Shown: one piece after another, positions 4,228 to 62,991 of the stretch
Layout: every line of letters begins with the position of its first letter
Position numbering within the stretch: position 1 is the stretch's first letter
Sequence record: NC_047838.1
Strand: one strand, 5' to 3'
DNA length: 64,000 nt
Made by a program: the position numbers and the translations under genes
The notes under the pieces: model-generated
Seen by the model: the letters and a program-made list of their open reading frames with translations, nothing else
Databases searched by the model: none
What the model was told of the DNA's origin: nothing

Positions 4228-4578
4228 TTATTTATTTAGCATGAATTTGCCATAATCTAATGACAATAGATCATCAAGTTCATCTCTCTGAACAATATAA
4301 ACCTGTGTGCCTAATTCTTCCCAGGTATAGTTTCTATACTCTTGGTGATGAAAGTTTATACCACGAAATCCCCACTGGAATAATTCAGTCACCGCCACCA
4401 AAGGGTGTTGATCGTAACTAATGTTTGGAGTCTTTGCAAAGTATTTAAACGTGCAGATATTTCCCTCTTCAGGAATTGGTGTCACAGTATCATTCAAAGC
4501 ATACATGATCAACTCCATTCTATCATCAATATTTTTCTCAGACTGAATGTCTTGTCGTATGGGTTCGATACGATTCAT
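4228..4578 (-). CDS. g2: DNA end protector gp2-like (short form)
   Basis: TFKYFAKT..YDQHPLV..GFRGINFH motif; between g48 and g4. Confidence 0.65.
   Translation of the reverse strand: MNRIEPIRQDIQSEKNIDDRMELIMYALNDTVTPIPEEGNICTFKYFAKTPNISYDQHPLVAVTELFQWGFRGINFHHQEYRNYTWEELGTQVYIVQRDELDDLLSLDYGKFMLNK
4231..4239 (-). promoter_or_regulatory. T4-type late promoter (CTAAATAAA) for g48-g53
   Basis: Reverse complement of tttatttag, 16 nt upstream of g48 start. Confidence 0.55.
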
Positions 4579-5018
4579 TTGATACCCAGTTCTTCTTCGG
4601 TGATTATCTTAAATTCAATTCTTCTGTCTTCACAGAACTCAGTTGCTGCTTTCCATTTTGCCTGGTTGACAGCATATGTTTTACACTCATAGATGTATGA
4701 CTTAGTGACCCTAGATTTTTTCTTGGGTTCCATGGTCTGTCTTTTAGGTTTTACTTCAATCACATAGGTTTTAATTTGACCTGTGCTTTCTTTTACTTTG
4801 ATGATGAAGTCAGGGAAATAACGATGCACTCTTCTATCAACAGGAGACACATAGGGAATCCAGAACTCTTCACTACCCCACTCCATAATATTTTCATTCA
4901 GGTCACACCACTTACAAAACTTGCGTTCCCAACTACTCCGACATATAATATTGTCAGGGTTGCCCTTATATTTCCTAGGGTATGAAGGTTTGTATTTACT
5001 CTTGATGCTTTCTGGCAT
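4575..5018 (-). CDS. g4: Head completion nuclease gp4
   Basis: YKPSYPRKYKG..IICRSSWE, HRYFPDF, IEVKP (PD-(D/E)xK) motifs. Confidence 0.92.
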   Translation of the reverse strand: MPESIKSKYKPSYPRKYKGNPDNIICRSSWERKFCKWCDLNENIMEWGSEEFWIPYVSPVDRRVHRYFPDFIIKVKESTGQIKTYVIEVKPKRQTMEPKKKSRVTKSYIYECKTYAVNQAKWKAATEFCEDRRIEFKIITEEELGIK

Positions 5019-5049
5019 ACATAATATATAAGGTAAAAATTATTTATAA

Positions 5050-5907
5050 ATGCCTTCGGAAATAAAACCCAAGGTCCGTAAAGTAGCGGACATAAAAGCA
5101 AAGTTACTTAACCCTGCTCTCACTTCACACTTTGAGGTGCAGATTCCTCTGCCTAACGGTGCTGTGCGAGCAGAGTTAGAGTCTATTAGACCTGATGGTG
5201 GAGAGCAGCAGGACGCTCTTAATATCAGATGCACGAACGCAAGTCTTCCTGGATCTAATCTTGCCACCCTTGAATTAAACAACACCTATCATGGCGTCAC
5301 TCAACGTCATGCATATCGTAGAGTTTATGATGATAGAATTGATCTTGAGTTTTTAGTAGATGCAGATGACTATCTTCCTATCAGATTTTTTGAGAAGTGG
5401 ATAGACTCAATCATGCTTCAGACACAAGAAGGTGAAGGAAATGAGAGTCCTGTCAGTCAATCATATACTTACAGAGCAAGTTATTCTGACGACTATGTTT
5501 GTCCTTCAGGATTGAAGATAGTTAAATTTGAAAGAACCGGAAAGAATGGTGATTATACAGGTAGCGCACTTGAATATACATTTGTGAATGCCTATCCTTT
5601 TACTATTTCGTCGATGCCTATTTCATATGATTCATCATCTCTTCTGAAATGCACGGTGTCATTTTCATATCTTCGTTATGTTATTAATGATGTAATCAAA
5701 AAACCAAGCACCACACCTGGCACGATTGGTGATCCACAGAGTCCTAAATCTGGATCCAAGCAAACGCCTGCTTTGAATAAGGACTCTAGAAATACGGTTC
5801 ATTCTTCAATTGATTCAATTGCAACCTCTGGCGAGGTAGGAGATACAGTTACTCCACAATTAAGACAAGAACTTCTTGCGTTTGCTCGTGGAGAAACAGG
5901 ATCTTAA
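5050..5907 (+). CDS. Tail-tube initiator/tube-like protein (gp54/gp19-like)
   Basis: SLPG..LAT, YRRVYDDRIDLEF, YTFVNAYP..ISSMPISY, VSFSY tube-fold motifs. Confidence 0.7.
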   Translation: MPSEIKPKVRKVADIKAKLLNPALTSHFEVQIPLPNGAVRAELESIRPDGGEQQDALNIRCTNASLPGSNLATLELNNTYHGVTQRHAYRRVYDDRIDLEFLVDADDYLPIRFFEKWIDSIMLQTQEGEGNESPVSQSYTYRASYSDDYVCPSGLKIVKFERTGKNGDYTGSALEYTFVNAYPFTISSMPISYDSSSLLKCTVSFSYLRYVINDVIKKPSTTPGTIGDPQSPKSGSKQTPALNKDSRNTVHSSIDSIATSGEVGDTVTPQLRQELLAFARGETGS

Positions 5908-6851: not shown

Positions 6852-9240
6852 GACTACTACTGATCCAATAGAAATACTCTTAGAGATGGGTGTAGACCTA
6901 GATAATCTCTCTGAAGAGGAGGATTATCTTAGTGCCTTGATGGAGGCGGTTAATTCACTGACAATTAAAGATGCAAGTGATCCTCGCATCGGATTCTTAG
7001 CAGACGAAATAAGAAAGGTAAGACAAAAAAGAAAAGAAGCAGACCCCAAGTTCAAAGCAAAGAAAACAAAGATATCTGCAAATTCCTTAAAGTCTACACC
7101 TAGACTTGCTGCTAAGACCACAAAAATAAGTCCTCAAAAACTTTTACCTGGAAGCACAGAGGTAGGAAAGGAAGAACCTGAGCAGGATTCTATTATAAAA
7201 ATTTTAACTGACATCTCTGAGTCAGTTAAGTCTATCTTATATTCTTTGAAGGCAAGTAATAATATCTCAAAGAACCTTGCTGAGGATGAGAGAAAGAGAC
7301 AAGAGAGTAAGAAAAGATCTGGTGCTGAGAGTAAGTTAGAGAAGAAAAGATTTGAAGGTCTAAAAAAACTTGGCGGTAAACTTATAGAACCAATCAAGGG
7401 ACCTTTAGAAATGCTTTTTAATTTTCTAAAGAATGTCATTCTTGGAAAGATCGTTCTTGGAATTATTGATTGGTTAGGTGATCCAGAAAATCAGAAAAAA
7501 CTTGAGAGTCTTGGTAGATTCTTCATGGACTGGTGGCCAACGATTGTCACTGCTGTATTACTGTTTGGTACAGGACTAGGTGGATTACTAAAATCAATCG
7601 TAGGTATCACTTTTAAATTCATACCAAAACTTCTTGGATTACTTCCTGGTCTATTGAAATTCTTGAAGTCCCCGATGGGGCGTATTGCTGGACTAGCAGT
7701 TGCTGGTGCTGGTTTAGCAGGTAGAATGATGGATGGTGGTGAGGATGATGTTGATCTAACAAAGCAAGATCCTGCACCTCAAAAGATGATGGACGGTGGT
7801 CTTGTTCCTGGTGAAGGTCCAAATAAGGATACCGTGCCTGCCATGTTGGCACCTGGTGAATTTGTTATGAGTAGGGGTGCTGTGCAGAAGTATGGAGCAG
7901 ACACCATGGCATCGATGAATGCTGCTGGTGGCGGAACTAATCTTCCACAGAGGATGAATGGTATAACTTATGCTGCTGGTGGTGGAATGATTGGTGATGA
8001 CGGAAAAGAGAAGGCATCTCCTAAGTTGGCCAGAGAGATGGAAAAGAGAGATAAAACACTAGGAGTAAATGAAGAAGTAAAATCAGATACTGCGAGTAAA
8101 AGACATGCTGAGTTAATGAAGACCACTAATCCGCAAAGGATTGCTGATTATGATGCCAAACATGGGCAAGGAGCATACTCTAAGAAACTACGTGAGAAAC
8201 TTGAAAAAACATATTCCACTCCATCTCCATCTGCACCAGCAGCGACGGCAATAAAATCAACTGGTAAAGTAGTTGGTAGAGAGAATTTACCTCCTGCGAC
8301 TAGAGCACTTCTTGAAAAGATGGATGCTCAAAGAGCAAGCGGAACTGCCGATATGATGTATTCTAAAAAAGGTGGTGGTTTTAGACAAAGAATATCTGCT
8401 GAAGACTTTAATCGAGTCAAAGGAATGGTGGGTGCGGCAAAAGAGGGTGGTGCTAAAGGTGTGTTAAATCACATGCTCTCAGGTGCAAAGAGTATGTTTG
8501 GTGGGATGATTGGTAAAGTTCAGGGTGCTGTTAATGACCCTAAATCTTTTGTTGAATCCATGGGTGGAACTGTTAGGGATGGAAATGTAGGAAGAATGAC
8601 ACCGCAACTACAGAAAGAATTTGATAAACTTAATGCGGCTAGAGCAAGAGCAGATAAACTAGAAGCAGAAAATAAGGCGATGTCAACTCAAGGGGGTCTT
8701 CGGAAACAACTTGAGAAGGATCCTTTATTTGCGGAGTATGAAAGAGCTTTTGATGATCCAAAACATCCTTTACATGATAAAGTAGCTGGTGATCTTTTTG
8801 ATGATACTGGAACTAAACATCCTCTAAGGTTTGAAGAATTTAAAAAGTTAAAAGCACAACAGAAAAATGGTGGTGGTGAAGTAAAAGAATCATCTGGTCA
8901 AAATTTTGCTGGTGGAACTGCAGATAGACAGTTGATTAAGGCACAACCTGGTGAGTACATGCTTCCCGTTGATACTGTTAATAATCTTGGTGGTCCTGCA
9001 AGACTTGATCAATTGGTTGCTAATACAGATAGCAATTCAACTCCTGCTAAGTTAGGAATGAGGTCAAGAAAGACACCACAGGTAGGACCTCCTATGCCCA
9101 TGCAACCACAAATTAATTTGATTCCCACTCCTACAGGAGGCAGTAAAGGATACGGCGATTCATCTGGATCTGCGCTTCCTAATTTTGATGCTGGCATCGG
9201 TGATCCTAACAAAGCAAAACTTCTTGGAGTGGTTAGATAA
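6841..9240 (+). CDS. Tape-measure-like / hub protein 1
   Basis: Helical K/E-rich N-terminus, hydrophobic helices, GGLVPGEGPNKDTVPAMLAPGEFVM motif typical of tape-measure C-termini; follows g26/g51. Confidence 0.6.
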   Translation: MASRTTTDPIEILLEMGVDLDNLSEEEDYLSALMEAVNSLTIKDASDPRIGFLADEIRKVRQKRKEADPKFKAKKTKISANSLKSTPRLAAKTTKISPQKLLPGSTEVGKEEPEQDSIIKILTDISESVKSILYSLKASNNISKNLAEDERKRQESKKRSGAESKLEKKRFEGLKKLGGKLIEPIKGPLEMLFNFLKNVILGKIVLGIIDWLGDPENQKKLESLGRFFMDWWPTIVTAVLLFGTGLGGLLKSIVGITFKFIPKLLGLLPGLLKFLKSPMGRIAGLAVAGAGLAGRMMDGGEDDVDLTKQDPAPQKMMDGGLVPGEGPNKDTVPAMLAPGEFVMSRGAVQKYGADTMASMNAAGGGTNLPQRMNGITYAAGGGMIGDDGKEKASPKLAREMEKRDKTLGVNEEVKSDTASKRHAELMKTTNPQRIADYDAKHGQGAYSKKLREKLEKTYSTPSPSAPAATAIKSTGKVVGRENLPPATRALLEKMDAQRASGTADMMYSKKGGGFRQRISAEDFNRVKGMVGAAKEGGAKGVLNHMLSGAKSMFGGMIGKVQGAVNDPKSFVESMGGTVRDGNVGRMTPQLQKEFDKLNAARARADKLEAENKAMSTQGGLRKQLEKDPLFAEYERAFDDPKHPLHDKVAGDLFDDTGTKHPLRFEEFKKLKAQQKNGGGEVKESSGQNFAGGTADRQLIKAQPGEYMLPVDTVNNLGGPARLDQLVANTDSNSTPAKLGMRSRKTPQVGPPMPMQPQINLIPTPTGGSKGYGDSSGSALPNFDAGIGDPNKAKLLGVVR

Positions 9241-11636
9241 TGTTAGGTCTCGCACTCAGAGGAGCATCTGCATTATCAAAGGCAGGTAAGGGAGCACAGA
9301 TGGCAAAAGCCATCACAGGTCGGAAGAAAAAACCAGTACCAGGCATGGCACGACCAGGTGGTGGCGAAGGTGGCGGTGGAGGAGGTTCTGCGATCATTAA
9401 AGCAAAGGTGGTCTCTGCTCCCGCATCTGCTCTTGTTCCTGTAAAAAAATCTCCTAATGTTCAGCAGGGAATGGGTTCAGGAATCATTAGTATTCTTGAA
9501 ACTATTAGAGCAAATGTAAAAGAGATTGATGATTTTTATAAAGGCACAGTTGCTGCCAAAAGAGAAGAGATAAAGAAGAGAAAGAAACAAGAGAGTGATC
9601 AGAGAAAAGCAGAGCAGGAAACAAAATTAGAAAAACCAAAGGTTGATAAAAAACCCGACATGAACTTGAAGGGTTTGAAGATGCCAAAGACTGGCATTCT
9701 TGACGGAATCTTTAGGTTCATTAGTAATGTATTGATGGGCATGTTGGTCATGAAGTTGATTGACTTTGCTGATGCCCTTGAGAAAAGTGGTATTCTCCCT
9801 CTACTTGGAAAGATAGGTGACTTTATTTTAGATATTGGTGGCAAGATACTTAACGGGTTAATAACTTTTATTGATAAAGGGTATGAAATTTATGATGGAC
9901 TAAGAAAATCTATTGGAGATAACTTTGGTGAGGGAGCACAAGAGCAGTTTGATAGTCTTGCTAGCACTCTCAACAAAGTATTAAATACTGTCTTCTCAGT
10001 TGGTCTTGCAATCTCTCTTCTTGCTGGTGCGATACCCCAGAAGAAACCAAAGCAACCAAAGAAACCAAAAAAACCAAAGAAACCAAAACCCAAACCTAAG
10101 ACAAAAGTAAAACCAAAACCAAAACCTAAAGGTTTCTTTGGTAGACTTGGAGCGGGTTTTCAAGCAGCAGGTGAAGGTCTTGCAAAAGCAGGACAAAGTG
10201 CTGTTGATTTAGGTGTTAGTGGTCTCAAGGCAATCGGTGGTGGTCTTAATAAAATTTCTGGTGGTAACTTAGGTAAACTAGGAAACTTCCTTGGAGAGCA
10301 ATATCAAAATGTTTCTAAGGGTGCAAGAGCAGCATTTGACAGAGTTGCTGGTCTTGGTAATTCTTTGAAATCAAAGTTTGGATCTGCCATGGATAGCGTC
10401 AAGGGTGCTATTGGAAACATGGCAGAGTCTGCCAAGAAGGCAGTCATGCAAAAAATTATTGAACCAATAAAACCTTTTCTTGATCCAATTATAGATAAGG
10501 CAAAAAAGATTGGTGATAAAGTTATTGGAATATTGAAAAAGATACCTGGATTTGATAATATACTTCAGGTGCTCAAGAAAAAAGGTGTTAATGGTTTAGG
10601 TGACGCTGCAGGCATTCTTAAAAAAGCAGGATCAAAAGCACTTCCTATAGTTGGTGGTATTTTTAATTTACTTTTTGCATATGATAGACTTGCGGGAGGA
10701 GATACTTTTGGTGCATTATTAGAATTACTCTCTGCTGGTCTTGATATCTCAGGACTTTTTGGATTTGCTCCTGGTCCTGGTATATCCATGGGTATTGATG
10801 CATACATGTTTGCGAGAGATTTTGTTCCTCTGATTCAGGAGGGTGAAGAGAAAGCAATTAATGCTATAGGACTTGGTGGTTTTAAATCTGAGATTGACAA
10901 AATCGCATCAAAACTTCCTGACCTTGGATCTATTGTAAAGATGTTTGGTGGAGAACAAGTTGAGCAAAAATCTGCTGCAGAGATTGCATCAACAACCGGA
11001 GACACCTCTGCTGCTGATGGCACTACACCTGCACCTGCTGCATCAGATTCACCTGCTGCATCAGATACACCTGCATCAACACCTAGTGTGAATATAGACA
11101 CTGTTGATGGAGGATCTAGAGAGCAAAGTGAAGGCACAAAAATTGCTGGTGATCTTGGTAGATTCTTATATAAAGAATTAAGTTCTCCTAGAGATTTCCA
11201 AGCAGTTACTGAGCATCCAGATTTTGGTGGATCATTTAGAAGATCATATGATTCTTATCATAATTACGATCGTGCTATTGATATTGGAGTATATCCTCAT
11301 GAGCAACCAAAAATTCTACAGGCAATAGCGAAATTTAACCAGATAAATGGAGTTAGTCCTGTTGAATTACTTCATGCTGGAAATGATCCAGGTGGTGGTC
11401 ATGATGATCACGTTCACATAGCATATGAGGGTGGTGGATATGTAGGTGGTAAGTATAATATGAAGTCAATTGAAAGACGTGCATCATATGAGGGTGGTGA
11501 GCAAATGATTGACATTCCTATTCCCATGCCTCAGCAACCAACTACCACCCCTCAACCAGAACTCGTCCCATCTGGATCTGGATCGTTCTCTGCAGACTTC
11601 AAAGATGACTTTGAATTCCTTGAGTTCCAGGGTTAA
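9240..11636 (+). CDS. Tape-measure-like / hub protein 2 with C-terminal peptidase M15-like motif
   Basis: Paralogous segment to 6841 protein; SYHNYDRAIDI...HDDHVHIAY near C-terminus. Confidence 0.55.
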   Translation: MLGLALRGASALSKAGKGAQMAKAITGRKKKPVPGMARPGGGEGGGGGGSAIIKAKVVSAPASALVPVKKSPNVQQGMGSGIISILETIRANVKEIDDFYKGTVAAKREEIKKRKKQESDQRKAEQETKLEKPKVDKKPDMNLKGLKMPKTGILDGIFRFISNVLMGMLVMKLIDFADALEKSGILPLLGKIGDFILDIGGKILNGLITFIDKGYEIYDGLRKSIGDNFGEGAQEQFDSLASTLNKVLNTVFSVGLAISLLAGAIPQKKPKQPKKPKKPKKPKPKPKTKVKPKPKPKGFFGRLGAGFQAAGEGLAKAGQSAVDLGVSGLKAIGGGLNKISGGNLGKLGNFLGEQYQNVSKGARAAFDRVAGLGNSLKSKFGSAMDSVKGAIGNMAESAKKAVMQKIIEPIKPFLDPIIDKAKKIGDKVIGILKKIPGFDNILQVLKKKGVNGLGDAAGILKKAGSKALPIVGGIFNLLFAYDRLAGGDTFGALLELLSAGLDISGLFGFAPGPGISMGIDAYMFARDFVPLIQEGEEKAINAIGLGGFKSEIDKIASKLPDLGSIVKMFGGEQVEQKSAAEIASTTGDTSAADGTTPAPAASDSPAASDTPASTPSVNIDTVDGGSREQSEGTKIAGDLGRFLYKELSSPRDFQAVTEHPDFGGSFRRSYDSYHNYDRAIDIGVYPHEQPKILQAIAKFNQINGVSPVELLHAGNDPGGGHDDHVHIAYEGGGYVGGKYNMKSIERRASYEGGEQMIDIPIPMPQQPTTTPQPELVPSGSGSFSADFKDDFEFLEFQG
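10035..10130 (+). repeat. Degenerate 9-nt/6-nt tandem repeat encoding (PKK)n/(PK)n
   Basis: ccaaagcaa ccaaagaaa ccaaaaaaa ccaaagaaa ccaaaa ccc aaa cct aag ... Confidence 0.8.
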
Positions 11637-36241: not shown

Positions 36242-38149
36242 ATGGGTATCAAAGCATTAGGGAATAACGCAGAGGACTTTGTTAATAAGTTTTTGAGAGC
36301 CCGTGGTGGGGATTCTACAGGACTTGATGCTGTGGCTCCTATATCATCACCATCAGGACTAACAGCAACTGGTGGTGTCATCAGTGATTATACTTCTGGA
36401 AGTGATATTTTTAGAGCACATATTTTCACCTCATCAGGAACTTTTGATGTAACAGAAATTGGTGATTTTCCTGCTGATGTAGATTATCTTGTTATTGGTG
36501 GAGGAGGATCTGGTGGAGGAGCACAACCCTTTAGTGCGACTGATGGTGGTGGTGGAGGTGCTGGTGGTTATAGAACTAGTATGCCAGAGGGACCTGGTGG
36601 ACCTTCACCATCAGCAGAATCTCAAATAACTGTTAGTACATCTCCAGGTTCTTATACAGTCACTGTTGGAGCTGGAGGTGCAGGTATCGGTGCAGGATAT
36701 GGTGGTGATGGTAGTAATTCTGTATTTGGACCAATAACTGCTGGTGGTGGAGGTGCTGGTGCTGGTTCTGCTCCTCCATATAGTGGTAGAAATGGTGCAT
36801 CTGGCGGTGGAGCTTCTGATACCGCTTTTAACAGTGGTGCTGGCGGCGGTGGAAACCTAACTCAAGGTGGAGGAAGTCCAATACCAAATCAAGGATATCC
36901 TGGAAGTGCTGGAGGTGCCTCTCCTGCTTATGGTGGAGGTGCTGGTGGTGGTGCAGGAGGCGCTGGTGGGCCAGTTCCAACATCTGCTGGAGGTAATGGT
37001 GGACCCGGTAAAGCAAGTGTAATATCAGCAGGTCCAGGAAATCCAGTTACAAGATCTGGTGGTGGAGGTGGAGGGGCTGAGGGTAATACTGGAGGCACTG
37101 GCGGACCTGGTGGTGGTGGCACCGGATCTACAGGTTCTGGTCGTGGTGGTGCTGCGACATTTTCAACAGGTTCTGGTGGTGGTGGAGGTTCTACACATGA
37201 TAGTAGTGTTGGTGGTAATGGTGGTTCCGGTATTGTTGTAGTTCGTTATCAAATAGGATCAATTGCTGCATCTGCAAAAGCAACTGGTGGTGTCATTAGT
37301 TTTTATGGTGGCAAAACTATTCATACCTTCACCAATTCTGGCACTTTTGACACAACTTCTGATTGGGATGCTGGAACAAATGAAGTAGAATATTTAATTG
37401 TTGCTGGTGGTGGATCTGGAGGCGGTAAAAATGGTGGTGCTGGAGGTGGTGCAGGTGGATTCGTCCCTGGCACAACTACTTTAAGTCATCCAACTTCTTA
37501 TCCTGTAACTGTTGGTGCTGGTGCTGTAGGTGTTGATGTTGCAGGATCAAACGGTAATCAAGGAACTCCATCAGTTTTTGGTCCAGGACCAATATCTGCT
37601 ACAGGTGGTGGTTATGGTGGTAATGGAGTTAGTAATGGTGATGGTGGTCCTGGTGGCTCTGGTGGTGGAGGAGGAGAAGATAATAGTCCAGGTCCAGCAA
37701 CAAATTATCCCGGTCCAACTCAACAAGGATTCCCTGGTGGCACTAACCCAGGACCCCAGGACGGACCAGCATATGGCGCTGGCGGCGGTGGCGGTGCTGG
37801 TGGTGTTGGAGGAAATGGATCATCAACAGTTGGTGGTGCTGGAGGTATAGGAAAACAAATACCAACAACATTTAGAAATCCTTTATCTGCCTCAGCACTT
37901 GGAACTCCTGGACCTGGTGGATCTTATTATGTTGCTGGTGGTGGTGGAGGAGGAACAGAAAACTCCAACCCTGGTGGAGGTGCTGGTGGTTCTGGTGGAG
38001 GTGGAAACGCCCCAGGAACTGGAGCTGGCGTACCTGGTCTGGCCAACACTGGCGGTGGTGGCGGTGGAGCATCAGTGTATAATGGTCCAGCTAGTAATGT
38101 TTCTGGTTCTGGTGGTTCAGGTATTGTCCTCATCGCATATCCTACTTGA
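36242..38149 (+). CDS. Two-domain glycine-rich adhesin-like protein, tip 2
   Basis: Two ATGG..H.FT.SG.F / YL[VI].GGG / GSGIV...Y units. Confidence 0.7.
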   Translation: MGIKALGNNAEDFVNKFLRARGGDSTGLDAVAPISSPSGLTATGGVISDYTSGSDIFRAHIFTSSGTFDVTEIGDFPADVDYLVIGGGGSGGGAQPFSATDGGGGGAGGYRTSMPEGPGGPSPSAESQITVSTSPGSYTVTVGAGGAGIGAGYGGDGSNSVFGPITAGGGGAGAGSAPPYSGRNGASGGGASDTAFNSGAGGGGNLTQGGGSPIPNQGYPGSAGGASPAYGGGAGGGAGGAGGPVPTSAGGNGGPGKASVISAGPGNPVTRSGGGGGGAEGNTGGTGGPGGGGTGSTGSGRGGAATFSTGSGGGGGSTHDSSVGGNGGSGIVVVRYQIGSIAASAKATGGVISFYGGKTIHTFTNSGTFDTTSDWDAGTNEVEYLIVAGGGSGGGKNGGAGGGAGGFVPGTTTLSHPTSYPVTVGAGAVGVDVAGSNGNQGTPSVFGPGPISATGGGYGGNGVSNGDGGPGGSGGGGGEDNSPGPATNYPGPTQQGFPGGTNPGPQDGPAYGAGGGGGAGGVGGNGSSTVGGAGGIGKQIPTTFRNPLSASALGTPGPGGSYYVAGGGGGGTENSNPGGGAGGSGGGGNAPGTGAGVPGLANTGGGGGGASVYNGPASNVSGSGGSGIVLIAYPT

Positions 38150-38182
38150 TAAATAACCAAAGGATTGCTATAATCCTAAATA
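38149..38182 (+). promoter_or_regulatory. Stacked promoters: late ATAAATAAC (38149), extended -10 TGcTATAAT (38166), late CTAAATA (38176)
   Basis: Direct sequence match upstream of the 38213 gene. Confidence 0.6.
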
Positions 38183-38212
38183 TCTAAAACAAACTTAGTC
38201 AAAAGATAAAAG

Positions 38213-38647
38213 ATGGCTCATTTTGCACAACTAGATGAAAACAATGTGGTAACCCAAGTCATTGTTGTGAGCAACGATGACACATCCGATTCCAACGGTG
38301 TAGAAACAGAAAGTATCGGTGTTGCGTTCTGTCAGAAACTCCTTGGTGCTGATACCAACTGGAAGCAGACCTCATATAATGGAAACATGAGAGGCAACTA
38401 TGCAGGTATTGGATATACCTACATGAGTAATGTTGCTACTTTGGGTGTTGGTTCTACTGACATCTTTATTAGTCAGCAACCTTATGCTTCTTGGACTATC
38501 AGTACAACAGCAGCACAGTGGGAAGCACCTATCACGCAACCTACACTGACTGATGATCAGATTGCAGCAGGTTCTTATTACACCTGGGACGAATCAGCAT
38601 ATCAAGCAGATAATACAACTGGATGGACACTTACCACTCCTGAATAA
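38213..38647 (+). CDS. Conserved small phage protein (MAHFAQLDENNVV), possible tail-fibre assembly factor
   Basis: MAHFAQLD..WKQTSYN...NYAGIGYTY..FI..QPY.SW family, recalled beside fibre genes. Confidence 0.55.
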   Translation: MAHFAQLDENNVVTQVIVVSNDDTSDSNGVETESIGVAFCQKLLGADTNWKQTSYNGNMRGNYAGIGYTYMSNVATLGVGSTDIFISQQPYASWTISTTAAQWEAPITQPTLTDDQIAAGSYYTWDESAYQADNTTGWTLTTPE

Positions 38648-45684: not shown

Positions 45685-46047
45685 ATGGCACTGGAAAGAG
45701 GAAAACTTAGTAATGTCGTTCAGGTCGCAGCAGGTGCGACCGTGGGTATTGCTACTTGTGCATCCGGTAAGAAAGTCTATATTAAATCAATCATTTGCCA
45801 TGCTACAGGACTTGGTATTGCCACCGCTGCTGGTCAGGTTTACCTTACGCCTGCAGGTGTGACAACCAGTTCAAACACAAGAATCTTTGATATTAATATA
45901 GCGAGAGGAGAAACAGTATTATTAGAACCAGCATATCCGATCGTATTGGGAGAAAATGGAGATACTCTCGCCGTTGGAACAGGAAATGTAACTGGATTAG
46001 CAGCAACACACATCAACTTTATGATTACTGGCGATAAGGAGGCTTGA
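45685..46047 (+). CDS. Small adaptor, class beta (MALERG)
   Basis: YIKSIICH.TG..ETVLLE..YPIV..GD shared with 35838/39825; late promoter 45661. Confidence 0.6.
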   Translation: MALERGKLSNVVQVAAGATVGIATCASGKKVYIKSIICHATGLGIATAAGQVYLTPAGVTTSSNTRIFDINIARGETVLLEPAYPIVLGENGDTLAVGTGNVTGLAATHINFMITGDKEA

Positions 46048-46050
46048 TTT

Positions 46051-47106
46051 ATGGCACCAATCAAATCGTCACTTTCAAGAAGCGCATCTAAACTTATCGG
46101 TGTTTTTAGAGAAAGAGACTTAAATATAAGAGGTTTGGTTCAGAAAGCAAGAGGAGATTTAGGAGCTTTTAGTGCATCTGGTGGAGATACAACAAGAACT
46201 TATAATGGCAAAACGATTCATACTTTTACAACAACAGGTGCTGCCACTCTTGTCTGTACTGGAAATCCAAAAGAGGTTGAGTATTTAATTGTTGGTGGTG
46301 GTGGACATGGTGTTGGTGGTTCTGGTGGAGGTGGTGGTGCCGGTGGATATAGAACTGGAACAACAACAATAGGAGCAGGAACTATAAACGTTCAAGTTGG
46401 TGCTGGTTCACCAATGGGCACTCCCATTCAATATAAATCTGTTGATTCACCATCTCCTTATGTAGAAAGTCCTAACCCTAAAAACGGCGGAACTCCATCA
46501 TTTTTTGGACCTATTATTTCTGAGGGTGGTGGTAATGGTGGTGGAGAGGCACCTAGTGGTCCAAATATAAGTGGTAGAGATGGTGGTTCTGGCGGTGGTG
46601 GATGGGCTGGTCCTTCAGACTCACCAGCAAACGCAGGAGGACTTGGCAGTTATGTTGTAGAAACTCAGACAGCATCCGGCAATCCACAAGGTAATAATGG
46701 TGGTGAAGCTAATGATGGTCCAGACTTTGACTCTTCTGGTGGTGGAGGTGGTGGTGCAGGACAAGCAGGTCAAAATGCTGGTCCAAATACCGGTGGAGAT
46801 GGTGGTTATGGATTAAGAGCACCAGATACATTCCGAGATCCTGGTGGATGGACTGGTGCTCCTGGACCTGGTGGAAACTGGTATGCTGCCGGTGGAGGTG
46901 GTGGTGGAGTTGATGGAAGGGGTGCTACCACATATGGCACTGGTGGATATGGTGGTGGTGGAAGTGGTGGAACCACAGGTGGTGATGGAACCAACAATAC
47001 TGGTGGTGGAGGAGGTGGATCCAGAGCAGGATTTGCTCCTACGGCTAGCTTGAGAGGAGGAAGTGGTGGACCTGGAGTTGTTCTTATTGCATATACTCCA
47101 GATTAA
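46051..47106 (+). CDS. Single-domain glycine-rich adhesin-like protein, tip 5
   Basis: One ASGG..KTIHTFT / YLIVGGGG / GVVLIAY unit. Confidence 0.7.
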   Translation: MAPIKSSLSRSASKLIGVFRERDLNIRGLVQKARGDLGAFSASGGDTTRTYNGKTIHTFTTTGAATLVCTGNPKEVEYLIVGGGGHGVGGSGGGGGAGGYRTGTTTIGAGTINVQVGAGSPMGTPIQYKSVDSPSPYVESPNPKNGGTPSFFGPIISEGGGNGGGEAPSGPNISGRDGGSGGGGWAGPSDSPANAGGLGSYVVETQTASGNPQGNNGGEANDGPDFDSSGGGGGGAGQAGQNAGPNTGGDGGYGLRAPDTFRDPGGWTGAPGPGGNWYAAGGGGGGVDGRGATTYGTGGYGGGGSGGTTGGDGTNNTGGGGGGSRAGFAPTASLRGGSGGPGVVLIAYTPD

Positions 47107-47108
47107 TA

Positions 47109-47117
47109 TGATATAAT
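47109..47117 (+). promoter_or_regulatory. Extended -10 promoter TGaTATAAT
   Basis: 12 nt upstream of the GTG start of the first oxygenase. Confidence 0.5.
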
Positions 47118-47129
47118 ATATTTTTTGAC

Positions 47130-47675
47130 GTGAAACATATACCATTTCAAACTGATTTTTACTCCTATATAATTCCTTCAAATAAAGAGTATTTGTTGAA
47201 TTTGTGCGAAAATTCTCCAAAAGTTAAAAATCAAACTTTTCTCTGGGGATCTAAATCAGTTTCAGAAAAAATTAGAATTAATCCAAATGGTTTCTGCGAT
47301 GCTTTGAAACCAGCAATAAATGAATTTTTTGAAGAGTTAGGAGCAACTGCACCTAAGATTAATGTGCATGAAGTTTGGAAAAATATTTACAAAAAAGGAT
47401 ACCATCAAGAACTGCATTATCATCCAGGATGTGACTTATCCTGTGTTATTTTTTTAGATGATTACAAAGAGGGACAGTCAAAATTTTATTTTTCCAATAG
47501 ACACTCATGTGAAATAACGAGCGTATGGGAAAAGTATGTAAATATAGATTCTTGGTACATGTATCCAGAGAGAGGTGGAGTAATATTTTTTCCTTCACAC
47601 ATGTTACATGGTGTTACCCCTCACAATTTAAGTGGAGAAAGAAAAACAATTTCTATCAATATCTCTTTTGATTGA
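47130..47675 (+). CDS. 2OG-Fe(II) oxygenase (TIGR02466-like)
   Basis: HYH..DLSCVIFL, IFFPSHMLHGV..RKTISIN. Confidence 0.75.
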   Translation: MKHIPFQTDFYSYIIPSNKEYLLNLCENSPKVKNQTFLWGSKSVSEKIRINPNGFCDALKPAINEFFEELGATAPKINVHEVWKNIYKKGYHQELHYHPGCDLSCVIFLDDYKEGQSKFYFSNRHSCEITSVWEKYVNIDSWYMYPERGGVIFFPSHMLHGVTPHNLSGERKTISINISFD

Positions 47676-47700
47676 CACTCCTCTGAACCTCATATATAAT
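47672..47700 (+). promoter_or_regulatory. Sigma70-type promoter TTGACA-17-TATAAT
   Basis: Perfect consensus upstream of three oxygenase genes. Confidence 0.85.
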
Positions 47701-47723
47701 AGACCTGAATACATTATAGGTAT

Positions 47724-48344
47724 ATGGCATTTCAATCAGTTTGGTATTATACCGACCTGCCCGAAGATATTGTAGATATCATCGAGAGGGACGTATCTGA
47801 AACTTTTGATGAACAAATGGGAGACTCCAAACTTCATGGGGATGCTCTCAATAAAGAGAAAAGGAACTCACAAAATGCCTGGATTCCAACGACTCACTGG
47901 GTCGGTGGTTTCTTGTGGCACTATATTCAACGTGCAAACCGTGAGAACTTCCTATATGATCTAAGGAACATCGACGGAGAGTCGATGCAATACACCCGAT
48001 ATGGTGAAGGTCAATTTTACGGATGGCATAATGATGCAGGACTTGCTACACAATACAAGCCCCAATCAGTAGGCAATCGTAATGATGGTCTGGCACAAGA
48101 CTTTGTGAATGAAAATATTGAGATGGTTCGCAAACTGTCTTTTGCGATGCAACTCTCTGACCCCGATGATTATGAGGGTGGTAATGTGCAACTGTTGGAT
48201 GAAGCAGGCAATAGTTATATTGTTCCCCGTAAACGAGGCACGATTGTATTGTTTGATTCCCGCACACAACACCGAGTTCTGAAAGTCACAAAAGGAACCC
48301 GTAAGTCTATCGTTGGATGGACTGTTGGACCCCGTTGGAAGTGA
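47724..48344 (+). CDS. 2OG-Fe(II) oxygenase, prolyl-4-hydroxylase/PKHD-like
   Basis: YGWHND, RKLS..QLSDPDDYEGG, VLFDS..HRV..VTKGTRKSIVGW. Confidence 0.88.
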   Translation: MAFQSVWYYTDLPEDIVDIIERDVSETFDEQMGDSKLHGDALNKEKRNSQNAWIPTTHWVGGFLWHYIQRANRENFLYDLRNIDGESMQYTRYGEGQFYGWHNDAGLATQYKPQSVGNRNDGLAQDFVNENIEMVRKLSFAMQLSDPDDYEGGNVQLLDEAGNSYIVPRKRGTIVLFDSRTQHRVLKVTKGTRKSIVGWTVGPRWK

Positions 48345-48352
48345 GGTAGAAC

Positions 48353-49090
48353 ATGGCAGAACAAATGAACGAACTGCAGTTGTTGTTTCAGGAGAAGCAA
48401 AACACAGGAACTGCCTGGACTCGTAATGACAAATTTGAAAAAGATGGATATCTGGTAGTCAAAGATCTCTGGGATCCTGAAGAACTTTATCATCCAGTCC
48501 CTGAACAGAAAGGACAATACAACTATTGGGATAAGAACCCTGAACATTTTAATCATGTTCCTGTTGAAAATCAGGTTGAAGGTTCTACTGCACGTTATTG
48601 GCATCCACAATATCGTGCGATTCACTCTGGTGTTCGCATGAAACTGGAGAAAGAAATCGGTCGCAAACTGTATAATACCTATTACTATGATAGGTATTAT
48701 TATCCTGGACAAGAACTGACACGACATGCTGACCGTGATGCATGTGAAATCTCTGTTTCTATTCATGTTAGCACCAACCTAGAAGGCAAGGATGCTGATT
48801 GGCCTTTCTGGATTAAGACACCAGATACTTACACCGACAAAAAGAAGACAACTGTTCTTGTTCCTGGTGAGAATCGTTCCCTGGTTCTGAAACCTGGTGA
48901 TGGTATTCTTTATAAAGGATGTGAAAGACCACACTGGCGTGATGCTATGCCTGGTGTGCAAAAGAAGAAGAATAAGAAACTGTTTGGCAAGAAAACTTCA
49001 GAGACTGAACTTTATTACCACCAAATCTTCTTCCACTATGTTTTGCAGGATGGACAAAGAGCACACTGTGCATGGGATAGAGCACGATGA
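48353..49090 (+). CDS. 2OG-Fe(II) oxygenase
   Basis: RHADRDACEISVS, LKPGDGILYKGCERPHWR. Confidence 0.8.
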   Translation: MAEQMNELQLLFQEKQNTGTAWTRNDKFEKDGYLVVKDLWDPEELYHPVPEQKGQYNYWDKNPEHFNHVPVENQVEGSTARYWHPQYRAIHSGVRMKLEKEIGRKLYNTYYYDRYYYPGQELTRHADRDACEISVSIHVSTNLEGKDADWPFWIKTPDTYTDKKKTTVLVPGENRSLVLKPGDGILYKGCERPHWRDAMPGVQKKKNKKLFGKKTSETELYYHQIFFHYVLQDGQRAHCAWDRAR

Positions 49091-49638
49091 AGGCACCACT
49101 TTTTGAATATCCTACTTATCAATATCAGATTAAAGACTGGGAGTTCAAGAAGAAAGGATTACTTAAAAGGATTAAGGAGGAGAAGTTCGTAAGGACTGAC
49201 CTCCAAACCTTTGAAACTGATAGGCAGACCAATAAGAAATCCTATCTTCATTACTTCCAAGATCTAATCAAAGATGAGTTGTGGGAGTTTGTGCAAGAGG
49301 CACAAGTTACCTGTAGTATGACTGATGTGTGGACTGTCAGGTATCAAAAAGGTGATCACCAAACAATTCACAATCATAAGAGTTGGGGATTTACTGGTAT
49401 TCTTTATGTTGAGTATGACCCTAAAGTTCATACTCCTACCTGTTTTGTAGCACCATGGCAAGATCCTAGAAGTGATACTACATCTCTTGCTTATCCACAG
49501 AACGTGAAAGAGGGAACAATCTTTATCTCTCCATCTTATACCCTACACTTTGTGCATCCTAATCAAGTAAGAAAGCACAGAACGATTATGTCTTTTGACC
49601 TTTTACCTAAACTTCCTGACCACCAATCTGTTTCTTGA
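49087..49638 (+). CDS. 2OG-Fe(II) oxygenase (TIGR02466-like)
   Basis: HNH..FTGILYV, EGTIFISPS..LHFV..RTIMSFD. Confidence 0.75.
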   Translation: MKAPLFEYPTYQYQIKDWEFKKKGLLKRIKEEKFVRTDLQTFETDRQTNKKSYLHYFQDLIKDELWEFVQEAQVTCSMTDVWTVRYQKGDHQTIHNHKSWGFTGILYVEYDPKVHTPTCFVAPWQDPRSDTTSLAYPQNVKEGTIFISPSYTLHFVHPNQVRKHRTIMSFDLLPKLPDHQSVS

Positions 49639-49664
49639 TAAATAACTAGAAACGTATAAGTGTA

Positions 49665-53728: not shown

Positions 53729-53757
53729 CTATAAATAACTAGAAAGATGATAGGGTA

Positions 53758-54786: not shown

Positions 54787-55803
54787 ATGGGTATCTTCAA
54801 CGAGTTTTTTAAGAAAGAAAAACCAGTTTTTACTGGACTTAAATTTGGTTTTGGTTCTGGTGGTGGTGGTGCAGCTGCACCTTCTCCAGTTTCTGCATCT
54901 GGCGGTACAAGAGAATCTAACGGAATTACACCTGGAAATGGTTACAGATATCATGTTTTTACATCGCCAGGAACTTTTACTGTTACTAGTGGAGGAAATG
55001 TCGAATTCCTTGTAGTTGGTGGTGGCGGTAGTGGTGGAACAGCAGGTACTCCTGGACACGGTGGAAACGGTGGTGCAGGAGGTGGTGGTGTACGAACAGG
55101 AACCGCACTTCCAGTTACAGCTAACGACTACACTATAACTATTGGTGCTGGTTCAGGTAATCCATCTAGAAGTGGAACACCATCTAGTATTGCTGGTCCA
55201 GATATTACTACGGTCACTGGACTTGGTGGCGGTGGAGGTGGGTTAGATTCTGATGATTCAGTTGGAACAAGCACGTCAGTTGGATCTGGTGGAGGATCTT
55301 GGGGTGGTGGTGGAGCGGTGGCGAATGTTCCTGGGGGACAACCATCGCAACCCACCGATTATGGTTCAACTAATTATGGAAATAGTGGTGGTGGTGGTGC
55401 TGATAGTCCTGCTTGGAATGGTGGAGGAGGTGGTGGTGCTGGTGCTGCTGGAAGTCCCAATCCTGCTAATAATGTGGCAGGTGATGGCGGCGCAGGTCAA
55501 CCACTACCTGCATATTCCGCACCGGTATTACAACCCGGTATTCCAACACCCGTCTGGCCTGTATTTGGTCCAACTGTAGGACCAACTGGTCTCTACGCTG
55601 GAGGCGGTGGTGGTGGTAGATCTCACCCCCAAGCAGGTGGTGGTGGTGGCGGAACTAATGGATCAGGTGGACCTGGTGGTGGAGGTAATGCAGATTTTGA
55701 TGGAAAGGTTAATACTGGTGGTGGTGGAGGGGCTCGCAGTCCAGATTCATCCGCTAACCCAACTGGCGGAACAGGTATAGTTGTGATAAGATACCAAGTC
55801 TGA
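54787..55803 (+). CDS. Single-domain glycine-rich adhesin-like protein, tip 7
   Basis: FNEFFKKEKP leader; one glycine-rich unit ending GIVVIRYQV. Confidence 0.7.
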   Translation: MGIFNEFFKKEKPVFTGLKFGFGSGGGGAAAPSPVSASGGTRESNGITPGNGYRYHVFTSPGTFTVTSGGNVEFLVVGGGGSGGTAGTPGHGGNGGAGGGGVRTGTALPVTANDYTITIGAGSGNPSRSGTPSSIAGPDITTVTGLGGGGGGLDSDDSVGTSTSVGSGGGSWGGGGAVANVPGGQPSQPTDYGSTNYGNSGGGGADSPAWNGGGGGGAGAAGSPNPANNVAGDGGAGQPLPAYSAPVLQPGIPTPVWPVFGPTVGPTGLYAGGGGGGRSHPQAGGGGGGTNGSGGPGGGGNADFDGKVNTGGGGGARSPDSSANPTGGTGIVVIRYQV

Positions 55804-55823: not shown

Positions 55824-56366
55824 ATGAAAAAACTTGAAAATCCAAAATTACCAAACTATTATTCTCTTAAAGATTTTATCTTAGGAGATAATTTTCCATG
55901 GTTTTATAATGAACACTTTGTATACAAAGAGAACACGGAGCATTACATAAAATCTGGTGAGGGATTCAGCGATATTTCTTTTTACACTCATTCTTTTTTG
56001 AATAGACCAAAGAATACAGGTATGGGAGAAAAGTATCCAACGGTTAACTCACCCCATACGGGTAAAGTTAGTGATGTTTTAAATTCTATTTTTATTGCCA
56101 ACAATATCGAAGTAAACTGCATTTACAGAATAAATGCAAATTTACTTCATCCATCAAAAACTGAGAAGAAAACTTTTATTCATGTCGATCATCCCTTTCC
56201 ACACAAGAATCTTCTAATATATCTGACAGACGCTGGAGGAAAAACTGTTTGCGGTAAAGATGTTCATGATCCAAAAGAGGATGACATAATCACATTTGAG
56301 GGGGAGCACTACAACTTTTTACCAGAAAATAATCGCAGAATAGTCATAGTCGCAACGTATATATGA
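55824..56366 (+). CDS. 2OG-Fe(II) oxygenase-like protein
   Basis: HVD..HKNLLIYL..GG.T, IITFEG.H..RRIVI. Confidence 0.7.
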   Translation: MKKLENPKLPNYYSLKDFILGDNFPWFYNEHFVYKENTEHYIKSGEGFSDISFYTHSFLNRPKNTGMGEKYPTVNSPHTGKVSDVLNSIFIANNIEVNCIYRINANLLHPSKTEKKTFIHVDHPFPHKNLLIYLTDAGGKTVCGKDVHDPKEDDIITFEGEHYNFLPENNRRIVIVATYI

Positions 56367-56560: not shown

Positions 56561-56605
56561 AGTGGCACAGAGACCCTCTAGGAGACCCCTAGGGGGTCTT
56601 ATAGT
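56549..56605 (+). promoter_or_regulatory. Early-type promoter element copy 1 (ACCAGT-N6-AGTGGCAC, hairpin, TATAGT)
   Basis: Repeated motif; inverted repeat 56570-56599. Confidence 0.65.
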
Positions 56606-56629
56606 ATGTGCAAACAGACCTTTAGGGGT

Positions 56630-56725
56630 ATGACTGCCACTCACAAGTTAATCTTCGTTGCATCGTTCTTCTGGTTGATGAACTGGGGTGTGCGTGTTAC
56701 CTCATTAGTTCTTGACAAATTCTAA
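56630..56725 (+). CDS. Small hydrophobic peptide (31 aa)
   Basis: MTATHKLIFVASFFWLMNWGVRVTSLVLDKF*; AGGGG SD. Confidence 0.5.
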   Translation: MTATHKLIFVASFFWLMNWGVRVTSLVLDKF

Positions 56726-56739
56726 AAATCCTGTATAAT
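56712..56739 (+). promoter_or_regulatory. Sigma70-type promoter TTGACA-16-TATAAT
   Basis: Consensus hexamers upstream of 56765 gene with GGAGG SD. Confidence 0.7.
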
Positions 56740-56764
56740 TACCTTTGTGGAGGTTAATCAAACT

Positions 56765-62458: not shown

Positions 62459-62991
62459 ATAAAACCTTTTGCAGAGAAAATCTAGAAATAGAAATTCATC
62501 ATCACCCACATTTTCATAATCTTAACGAGAAGTTGATAGATGATCTTTCTAAACTTAGTTTTTATTCATATGATGATAATCAAAACTTTACGAATATCAA
62601 AGGTAGTCAATTTAATTTTGTTAGAAATAAACTCTCTTTGAAACCTAGAGGAGTAACTTTAGTTGAAAACTGGGCAAAACAAATTATTCAAAATAAATTG
62701 ATGTTTCCAGTAGAATTTAGATTTGACACCTGGGCGGCAAGATTAGATAGAGATCAGGAAACATTAGAGCATGATCATCTGTATTATGCTACATTTTCTT
62801 TTGTTTATTTTGTTAATACTCCAGAGGGAGCATCACCTTTAGTTTTTTCTACAAGTGGTAGGAAAGTTAAAGCACAACCTGGTAAACTTGTATTGTTTCC
62901 TGCTCCATTAAGACATAAAGTTCCAGTCAACAAATGTGATAATAGGGTCACGATTGCATCGAATATCACCATCATAGAGAAAACTATGTGA
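62455..62991 (+). CDS. 2OG-Fe(II) oxygenase (TIGR02466-like)
   Basis: HDH..FSFVYFVN..PGKLVLFP..LRHKV..RVTIASN. Confidence 0.75.
   Translation: MNKTFCRENLEIEIHHHPHFHNLNEKLIDDLSKLSFYSYDDNQNFTNIKGSQFNFVRNKLSLKPRGVTLVENWAKQIIQNKLMFPVEFRFDTWAARLDRDQETLEHDHLYYATFSFVYFVNTPEGASPLVFSTSGRKVKAQPGKLVLFPAPLRHKVPVNKCDNRVTIASNITIIEKTM

Follow-up and report, generated by a model that had tools for sequence, protein, structure and literature searches.

The role of the Fe(II)/2-oxoglutarate (2OG) oxygenases of marine T4-like cyanophages has been open since the first comparative genomes (PMC3037559), that is, for 15 years. Sullivan et al. 2010 (PMC3037559) described clusters T4-GC412, GC615 ('hypothetical with ferrochelatase domain') and GC155/101, which are present in multiple copies in 14 of 16 cyanomyoviruses, and proposed roles in DNA repair or in relation to 2OG/NtcA. 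Here we analyze the first 64 kb (hereafter the window; window coordinates are genome coordinates) of Synechococcus phage Bellamy (MF351863 / NC_047838; Kyanoviridae, Bellamyvirus), in which gp46, gp47 and gp48, members of these clusters, stand together with two further oxygenase genes, gp45 and gp55, among the genes for fibres and their glycine-rich tips. The genes, their multiplicity and the 'ferrochelatase-domain' family were already known in 2010 (PMC3037559). That study did not note that gp46 and gp47 are paired and, in other phages, fused, that their sigma70 promoter is conserved or that the genes are linked to fibre tips; the pairing, the fusions and the promoter conservation, like the name corrections, the tip cassette grammar and the module shared with HMO-2011-type phages, were not found in the literature searched either. 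Judged from gene order, the link between tips and oxygenases is real and extends beyond Bellamy. The reading that we tentatively favor, with confidence falling somewhat short of an even balance, is that of a fibre-module protein-oxygenase system whose enzymes would modify or mature the tips or their helper proteins.

Several described systems resemble parts of this one. The collagen prolyl 4-hydroxylase (P4H) of Paramecium bursaria chlorella virus 1 (PDB 5c5t) is a virus-encoded enzyme with a PF13640-type double-stranded beta-helix (DSBH) that hydroxylates a Pro-rich protein of the virus or its host, and it is among the fold matches of gp55, but its substrates are Pro-rich repeats, whereas the Bellamy tips lack Pro-Gly enrichment, and sequence identity is 9 to 15%. 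For PPHD, a Pseudomonas prolyl hydroxylase whose substrate is EF-Tu (PDB 4iw3, 4j25), and for the animal HIF prolyl hydroxylase PHD2, the match is confined to the common DSBH core. PKHD-type hydroxylases of the PiuC and YbiX kind (PDB 9ghl, 9qn1, 3dkq) are the only solved proteins found by the gp46 sequence (E = 1.7e-5, over the C-terminal 68 residues), and a paralogue in S-PM2 is annotated PiuC. Bacterial piuC-type genes pair with TonB-dependent iron receptors (PMC12004947). In Bellamy, in contrast, there is no TonB-receptor context, and the similarity covers the metal-binding half only. In T4-type phages, chaperones of the gp57A and gp38 type are encoded beside the fibre genes, are needed for fibre maturation and are absent from the particle. 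The cyanophage loci resemble this arrangement in having accessory genes beside fibres, including a phrog_4697 'tail assembly chaperone' gene interleaved with oxygenases in S-PM2, S-CAM1 and S-CAM3; the T4 factors are chaperones, however, not redox enzymes, and they are not known to modify T4 fibres covalently.

Predicted oxygenases in the Bellamy fibre array

An earlier note on this DNA, made from the sequence alone, had placed four oxygenases (at 47130, 47724, 48353 and 49087) and a fifth (at 55824) in the fibre array, and open reading frames (ORFs), Pfam searches, folds and motifs bear this out. The genes gp45 (47130..47675), gp46 (47724..48344), gp47 (48353..49090), gp48 (49087..49638, its start overlapping gp47 by 4 nt) and gp55 (55824..56366), all on the + strand, are predicted to encode intact DSBH Fe(II)/2OG oxygenases. 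Pfam cut-offs were passed by gp45 and gp48 (both PF13759, phrog_81) and by gp46 (PF13640, P4H/PiuC-like, cluster T4-GC412), and only gp46 has a P4H-type domain by this test (E = 1.8e-15; 58 bits, with the cut-off at 27). No match was obtained in the Pfam search for gp47 (phrog_2954, T4-GC615) or gp55 (phrog_274). For these two proteins, alignments were built from environmental relatives and followed by structure prediction and comparison with PDB folds. Among the PDB matches listed for the gp47 model (predicted local distance difference test [pLDDT] 88, predicted template-modeling score [pTM] 0.86) and for the gp55 model, a beta jelly-roll (pLDDT 91, pTM 0.88), there were only Fe(II)/2OG oxygenases.

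Candidate metal-binding residues could be assigned in each family. The triad typical of the superfamily consists of two His and a carboxylate (HxD/E...H), and a basic residue some 10 positions beyond the distal His binds the C5 carboxylate of 2OG. In gp46, H102, D104 and H183 are invariant in 23 sequences, with R193 at +10, and in gp55 the set H120, D122, H162 and R172 is invariant in 22 sequences, R172 again standing at +10. For gp47, each of H125, D127 and H194 is retained in 90% or more of 24 sequences; R196 lies at +2 from the distal His, and an invariant R236 follows a variable insert. The gp45/gp48 family has an HxH...H...R motif, namely an invariant H95-x-H97...H154 with a His in the carboxylate's place and R165 at +11. 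This H-x-H...H arrangement of the PF13759-type proteins may form a 3-His iron site, and it may do so as well in gp80 (62533..62991, + strand, PF13759), the genome's sixth oxygenase, which is found away from the fibre array in a stretch of small genes ahead of the helicase. Profile comparison linked the gp55 family to the gp45/48 family with 84% probability and showed no relation between the latter and the gp47 family, so that gp47 is placed only by its fold. A PDB sequence search with gp47 was empty, as was one with the tip protein gp44.

RefSeq starts gp45 at ATG 47202. Starting instead at GTG 47130, as in the earlier note, lengthens the protein by 24 residues, so that it aligns with gp48 and phrog_81 from residue 1, and we prefer this start because of the homologous N terminus.

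Two of the current gene names were rejected. For gp47 ('ferrochelatase' in RefSeq/PHROG) there is no Pfam ferrochelatase and no PDB sequence match, and the listed fold matches are all 2OG oxygenases; for gp55 ('DNA endonuclease V', DenV) there is no Pfam match, and the listed fold matches are again only 2OG oxygenases. Both names, 'ferrochelatase' attached to phrog_2954/3531 and 'DNA endonuclease V' to phrog_274, recur in many cyanophage and pelagiphage records. Independently of what the enzymes do, two RefSeq/PHROG names in hundreds of cyanophage records are hence wrong.

A conserved trio and a probable gp46-gp47 pair

Relatives of gp46 in IMG/VR numbered 412, and environmental loci were compared for the best 80 of these, which are 82 to 98% identical to gp46. 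In all 80 loci gp47 directly follows gp46, usually together with a gp48-like gene, and the flanks are very variable. The best relatives of gp45 (43%) and of gp55 do not rise above 43 to 46% identity. By this comparison, gp46, gp47 and gp48 appear as a conserved trio, of which gp48 is the usual third member, and gp45 and gp55 as two fast-evolving extra copies, gp45 being lineage-specific. Contigs of four seawater metatranscriptome libraries (two studies) cover gp46 to gp48 and not gp45, with DNA carry-over being possible; since these are assembled contigs, strand, transcript start and timing are not readable from them. The absence of RNA-library coverage fits a lineage-specific addition of gp45.

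ACG-2014f and S-SCSM1 each have one coding sequence (362 and 453 aa, respectively) in which a gp47-like domain is fused to PF13640, and the same combination is present in two viral Atlas clusters (343 and 390 aa). In the two fusion genes (gene 207 of ACG-2014f, at 4487-5575 of the extracted locus; gene 248 of S-SCSM1, at 8909-10270 of its extracted locus) the domain order is the reverse of that of gp46-gp47 in Bellamy. Given that the two genes are adjacent throughout and form fusions in other phages (Rosetta-stone evidence), their products would act together, and we infer that gp46 and gp47 work as a functional pair.

Linkage of oxygenases to fibre tips within Kyanoviridae

All nine Gly_rich_2 (PF21722) domains of the Bellamy genome (205 kb) lie between 36 and 56 kb, in the six tip proteins gp33, 38, 41, 44, 51 and 54, which contain 30 to 34% Gly and 6 to 9% Pro. 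Both single-domain tips, gp44 (46051..47106, + strand; 30% Gly, 7% Pro; phrog_2295) and gp54 (54787..55803, + strand; 31% Gly, 9% Pro), are directly followed by an oxygenase, as the earlier note had pointed out, with gaps of 23 nt and 20 nt, respectively.

The neighborhood statistics show that this proximity exceeds chance in other genera. Nineteen complete genomes representing 19 genera were searched with PF21722, PF13640, phrog_81, phrog_274 and phrog_2954; they hold 5 to 21 oxygenase-like genes each, and Gly_rich_2 tips are found in 13 of the 19. Across the 12 other tip-bearing genera, we counted 40 oxygenase genes at no more than 8 kb from such a tip, compared to 12.3 expected (circular-shift p < 1e-4), and this ∼3-fold enrichment is driven by 9 of the 13 tip-bearing genomes. 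Counts within 5 to 10 kb replaced the minimum tip-to-oxygenase distance, a measure judged too weak given the 5 to 21 clustered oxygenases per genome. At the level of single loci, 44 of 61 distinct cases have a Gly-rich ORF among the three ORFs that precede gp46. A tblastn search with gp44 against a phage collection returned Bellamy itself only, a result uninformative on tip distribution, as the Gly-rich query is masked by the low-complexity filter.

The gene orders themselves are instructive. S-RSM4 has a late promoter, a small ORF, a tip, a gp34-like gene and then about 11 oxygenase-like genes, the last of which is gp47-like, followed by a late-promoter Gly-rich gene; gaps in this array range from −34 to +9 nt, and it contains no sigma70 site. 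The arrays of Syn9 and S-RIM44 likewise lack sigma70 promoters and, like that of S-RSM4, are packed behind late-promoter genes. In genomes that had looked decoupled (S-PM2, S-CAM1 and S-CAM3), the oxygenase cluster still lies behind a fibre gene, the order being short tail fibre, oxygenase, phrog_4697 'tail assembly chaperone', PiuC-like gene, phrog_274 oxygenase and, further on, helicase; the gap between the short tail fibre and the first oxygenase is 4 to 8 nt in S-PM2 and S-CAM3 and 35 nt in S-CAM1. S-SCSM1 has a fibre pair flanked by four oxygenases on one side and three on the other. All of these data come from one virus family, and inherited gene order would therefore be a sufficient explanation for the Kyanoviridae part of the linkage.

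The tip-plus-oxygenase block in SAR11 podophages

HTVC033P is a 53-kb SAR11 podophage of the HMO-2011 type, unrelated to Bellamy, and its phage group is very abundant. On one strand it carries, in this order, a tail fibre gene, a gp40-like small gene (32% identity), a tip of 598 aa with two Gly_rich_2 domains and 34% Gly, a gp34-like gene (42%), a second tip of 580 aa, a PF13640 gene, a PF13759 gene and a phrog_2954 (gp47-like) gene. The block shares with that of Bellamy the same three oxygenase families (those of gp46, gp48 and gp47) and the tip and helper families, at 31 to 42% identity. The HTVC033P report (PMC9038755) leaves these genes undiscussed. The order tip, gp46-like gene, oxygenase, gp47-like gene is present in 48 of the 49 environmental relatives of HTVC033P that have at least 3.5 kb of upstream sequence. 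Relatives of gp34, among them the HTVC033P one, lie between a tip and a gp46-like oxygenase in many loci. This block order is thus kept across two phage families infecting different phyla and is therefore hard to square with random cargo.

Predicted folds, catalytic motifs, promoters and a conserved gene order are what the analysis shows; that the substrate lies in the fibre module we infer. In the favored reading of a fibre-module protein-oxygenase system, the trio would be part of a fibre-tip module in which late-promoter cassettes (a phrog_20100 gene plus a Gly_rich_2 tip) and a gp34-like gene are followed by the oxygenase operon. The oxygenases would be nonvirion enzymes acting on fibre-module proteins (tips or helpers) inside the infected cell, with gp46 and gp47 acting as a pair. 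In the Bellamy lineage, a near-consensus sigma70 promoter would make gp46 to gp48 available before late fibre synthesis, read-through from upstream late promoters would add to their expression, and gp55 would be transcribed together with the tip gene gp54. A far-reaching version of this proposal, which we consider unlikely in its entirety, would have a horizontally exchanged and self-contained 'fibre-tip maturation module' of receptor-binding Gly_rich_2 tips, a gp34-like helper and a fixed trio of different 2OG oxygenases, with gp46 and gp47 as one two-subunit enzyme that oxidizes tips or helpers, common to T4-like cyanophages and HMO-2011-type SAR11 podophages. The outcome is a bounded hypothesis, comprising the three-family set (PF13640, PF13759 and phrog_2954) and its partners (Gly_rich_2 tips and gp34-like proteins), and two culturable systems are at hand for it, Bellamy on WH8109 and HTVC033P on HTCC1062. 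If tips are indeed enzymatically oxidized, predictions of host range that use only the tip sequence would be incomplete; if there is a maturation module, the unexplained enzyme family that is most abundant in ocean phages would gain a role in host recognition.

Promoters and expression timing

Sigma70-type sites were scored over 12 hexamer positions with a threshold of 11/12. The perfect TTGACA-17-TATAAT (12/12) at 47672..47700 (+ strand), which the earlier note had reported, is exact; it shares bases with the gp45 stop codon, and 23 nt separate the end of its −10 element from the gp46 ATG. Sites scoring at least 11/12 number 28 on the coding strand of the Bellamy genome and 2 on the opposite strand, and only seven perfect sites exist genome-wide. 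Among gp46 orthologues, 55 of 66 distinct upstream regions keep a site of at least 11/12, with the −10 element mostly ending 23 nt before the ATG, even though the spacer and flanks are freely variable. The site scores 12/12 in S-SM2 and 11/12 in S-RIM50 and is missing in P-RSM4, S-SSM5 and S-PM2. By three tests, namely strand bias, rarity of perfect sites and positional conservation, this predicted promoter is most probably real. A comparable site is found in podophages, where 37 of 62 distinct intergenic regions between an HTVC033P-type tip and the gp46-like gene hold a sigma70-type site of at least 11/12. The leader that follows the gp46 promoter (47701-47723, about CTGAATACATTAT) is kept in most orthologue loci though the spacer varies, and it may serve regulation or the initiation of translation.

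Upstream of gp45, the extended −10-like site TGATATAAT at 47109..47117 (+ strand) is present as the earlier note had stated; its role as a weak host-type promoter for gp45 is possible but plausible only, because there is no good −35. TGnTATAAT occurs 10 times on the + strand of the Bellamy genome and 3 times on the − strand. The −10-like box ends 12 nt before GTG 47130, which would imply a nearly leaderless gp45 mRNA. No late motif was found upstream of gp45 to gp48 in a scan of the Bellamy fibre array. No terminator was found between gp44 and gp45 to gp48, and late read-through into these genes is therefore likely as well. An upstream scan revealed no promoter of its own for gp55, which lies 20 nt behind gp54; the late promoter of gp53 should therefore drive its transcription. 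The earlier note had concluded from host-type promoters that the oxygenases are expressed before the fibres; such timing would apply to the Bellamy lineage and does not hold as a general rule.

The conserved, near-perfect promoter at gp46 and the 28:2 strand bias would equally suit an explanation in which the oxygenases merely hitch-hike on their position. The trio would then belong to an accessory island at the junction between late fibre genes and early small genes, its enzymes would act early on a conserved host or other nonvirion target (e.g., a translation factor), and fibre cassettes would have multiplied around it. The order fibre module, oxygenases, small genes, helicase in P-RSM4, S-SSM5, S-RIM50, S-PM2, S-CAM3 and Bellamy is consistent with such a junction, as is the extreme plasticity of the gp46-gp47 flanks. 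A target outside the tips would further account for the 82 to 98% identity of gp46 (best 80 of 412 relatives) across loci with differing tips, for the independence of tips and gp47-like genes in presence and absence, for the 5 to 21 oxygenase-like genes per genome in many contexts and for the EF-Tu prolyl hydroxylase among the top fold matches. On the other side, cargo is expected to turn over, whereas the order of tip, helper and three oxygenases is kept in unrelated podophages at 31 to 42% identity; the arrays of S-RSM4, Syn9 and S-RIM44 lack sigma70 promoters and lie behind late-promoter genes; and a fibre-assembly-type gene stands between oxygenases in three genera. We regard hitch-hiking, the main rival reading, as possible, if on the doubtful side.

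Evidence bearing against a role on the tips

A number of observations weigh against the idea that the enzymes act on proteins of the fibre module. The most direct ones concern the tips themselves. The earlier note had described these as rich in GPGG, PGP and SPGP, which turned out to reflect mostly composition: no Pro-Gly motif enrichment was detected in the six tips, PG and GP dipeptides being at or below the shuffled expectation, and the residue after Pro is Gly 78 times out of 239 (33%), a share that equals the Gly frequency. A collagen-like X-Pro-Gly target was rejected, as the tips hold no such signal. The literature search yielded no hydroxylated phage virion protein, no characterized cyanophage 2OG enzyme and neither virion mass-spectrometry nor biochemical data. 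Moreover, the tips are hypervariable, gp46 being conserved to a far greater degree, and an early role directed at the host would be just as compatible with the strong host-type promoter of gp46.

The linkage, too, has its limits. The minimum tip-to-oxygenase distance was not significant (p = 0.12 to 0.15), and because Kyanoviridae gene order may be inherited, the genomes are not independent samples. The presence of gp47-like genes is independent of that of tips in the 19 genomes (9 with both, 4 with gp47 only, 4 with tips only, 2 with neither; Fisher p = 1), and there is no correlation between oxygenase and tip copy numbers (rho = −0.03). S-SM2 keeps gp46 to gp48 at ∼85% identity and has no Gly_rich_2 domain; S-MbCM6, S-PM2 and ACG-2014f, like S-SM2, have oxygenases without Gly_rich_2 tips. 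No oxygenase lies within 8 kb of a tip in S-CAM1, S-CAM3, ACG-2014a or S-SCSM1. Paralogues are found beside UvsW/UvsY, NrdAB, tRNAs and sugar-nucleotide genes, and the gp47-like/PF13640 fusion of ACG-2014f adjoins NrdAB. As further counter-examples, a P4H-like gene of Melnitz stands alone among small genes, marine virus AG-345-E15 lacks a Gly-rich neighbor, and HTVC008M has a five-gene oxygenase operon beside neck genes. The region behind tail-fibre genes is in any case a common site of accessory genes in phages. Of the earlier proposal that the oxygenases hydroxylate the adhesins, the gene linkage is borne out and extends beyond Bellamy, whereas a strict tie between enzyme and substrate is disfavored by the presence/absence pattern, the copy numbers, the paralogue contexts and the lack of X-Pro-Gly.

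Alternatives suggested by folds and by other neighborhoods

The ranking of fold matches is flat, with unrelated small-molecule enzymes within 1 Z unit of the prolyl hydroxylases, and no substrate class can therefore be read from structure. AsqJ, SnoN and amino-acid halogenases or hydroxylases among the matches raise the possibility of a small-molecule, glycan or 2OG-level role, that is, oxidation of metabolites or glycoconjugates, or conversion of 2OG to succinate that tunes host nitrogen-status signaling. The latter would accord with the 2OG/NtcA link proposed by Sullivan et al. 2010 (PMC3037559). Also in favor of this group, a carbamoyltransferase gene adjoins the gp46-like gene in P-RSM4, S-SSM5 and S-CAM1, and oxygenases of S-SCSM1 are interleaved with genes for GDP-mannose dehydratase, GDP-fucose synthase, mannose-6-phosphate isomerase, carbamoyltransferase and O-fucosyltransferase; Bellamy's own cluster, however, contains no sugar genes. 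A sink for 2OG would need neither 5 to 21 divergent paralogues nor a conserved three-family set, and a role at the level of small molecules leaves the conserved position behind tips in two phage families unexplained. We consider this group of explanations very unlikely. In S-SCSM1 itself, the region at 98.5-109.5 kb, where oxygenases lie among genes for GDP-fucose protein O-fucosyltransferase, GDP-mannose 4,6-dehydratase and GDP-L-fucose synthase and several tRNAs, is possibly an island for glycan or glycoprotein modification.

AlkB chains among the gp47 fold matches bring up nucleic-acid repair or modification, in which AlkB-like enzymes would demethylate or hydroxylate nucleic acids (DNA or RNA) of the phage or its host. 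DNA repair had been proposed by Weigele 2007, as cited in PMC3037559, and in many cyanophages other PF13640 paralogues have UvsW/UvsY and DNA helicase genes as neighbors. Yet these replication-side paralogues belong to orthologous groups different from that of gp46 (28 to 34% identity), and the Bellamy cluster has no nucleic-acid-binding domain or context, which makes this alternative the least probable of those considered here.

Cassette organization of the Bellamy fibre array

The oxygenases are set in a long + strand run of baseplate and fibre genes at 24-56 kb. Within it, a cassette unit is repeated, in which a late-type motif of consensus ATAAATAACTAgAAA lies ∼20 to 25 nt 5′ of a small gene and a Gly-rich tip gene follows 2 to 15 nt on. 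Three of the small cassette genes, gp32, gp37 and gp43, form family phrog_20100. Between 32865 and 53745, the late motif ATAAATAACTAgAAA was observed ∼20 to 25 nt before the ATG of gp29, 30, 32, 34, 35, 37, 39, 40, 42, 43, 49, 50, 52 and 53. The Gly-rich tip genes each lack a promoter of their own and are coupled to the preceding gene. ATAAATA occurs 45 times on the + strand of the genome and 3 times on the − strand. The cassette immediately before the oxygenases begins with gp43 (45685..46047, + strand), whose late motif lies ∼20 nt upstream and which is separated from the tip gene gp44 by 3 nt. The late-promoter motif GATAAATAACTAGAAA at 49637..49652 (+ strand) restarts the fibre cassettes at gp49, and the one at 53729..53745 (+ strand) is the sole promoter-like site upstream of gp53-gp54-gp55.

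The small protein gp34 (38213..38647, + strand; phrog_7759, function unknown) follows the tip gp33. Its upstream region (38146-38190) holds an 11/12 sigma70-type site (38146), TGnTATAAT (38166) and a late CTAAATA (38176), which suggests that this candidate helper could be expressed both early and late. After gp56 (56570-56740), we observed a GC-rich palindrome, a terminator-like hairpin at 56684-56704 and a perfect TTGACA-16-TATAAT at 56712; as predicted elements, these would mark the switch from the late fibre array to a small early-gene block. Finally, a Gly-codon-rich stretch of gp44 (46216-46369) shows a very high spike of contig depth in every seawater RNA library, accompanied by numerous joints and loose ends, and we take this spike to be low-complexity cross-matching from many organisms rather than gp44 expression.

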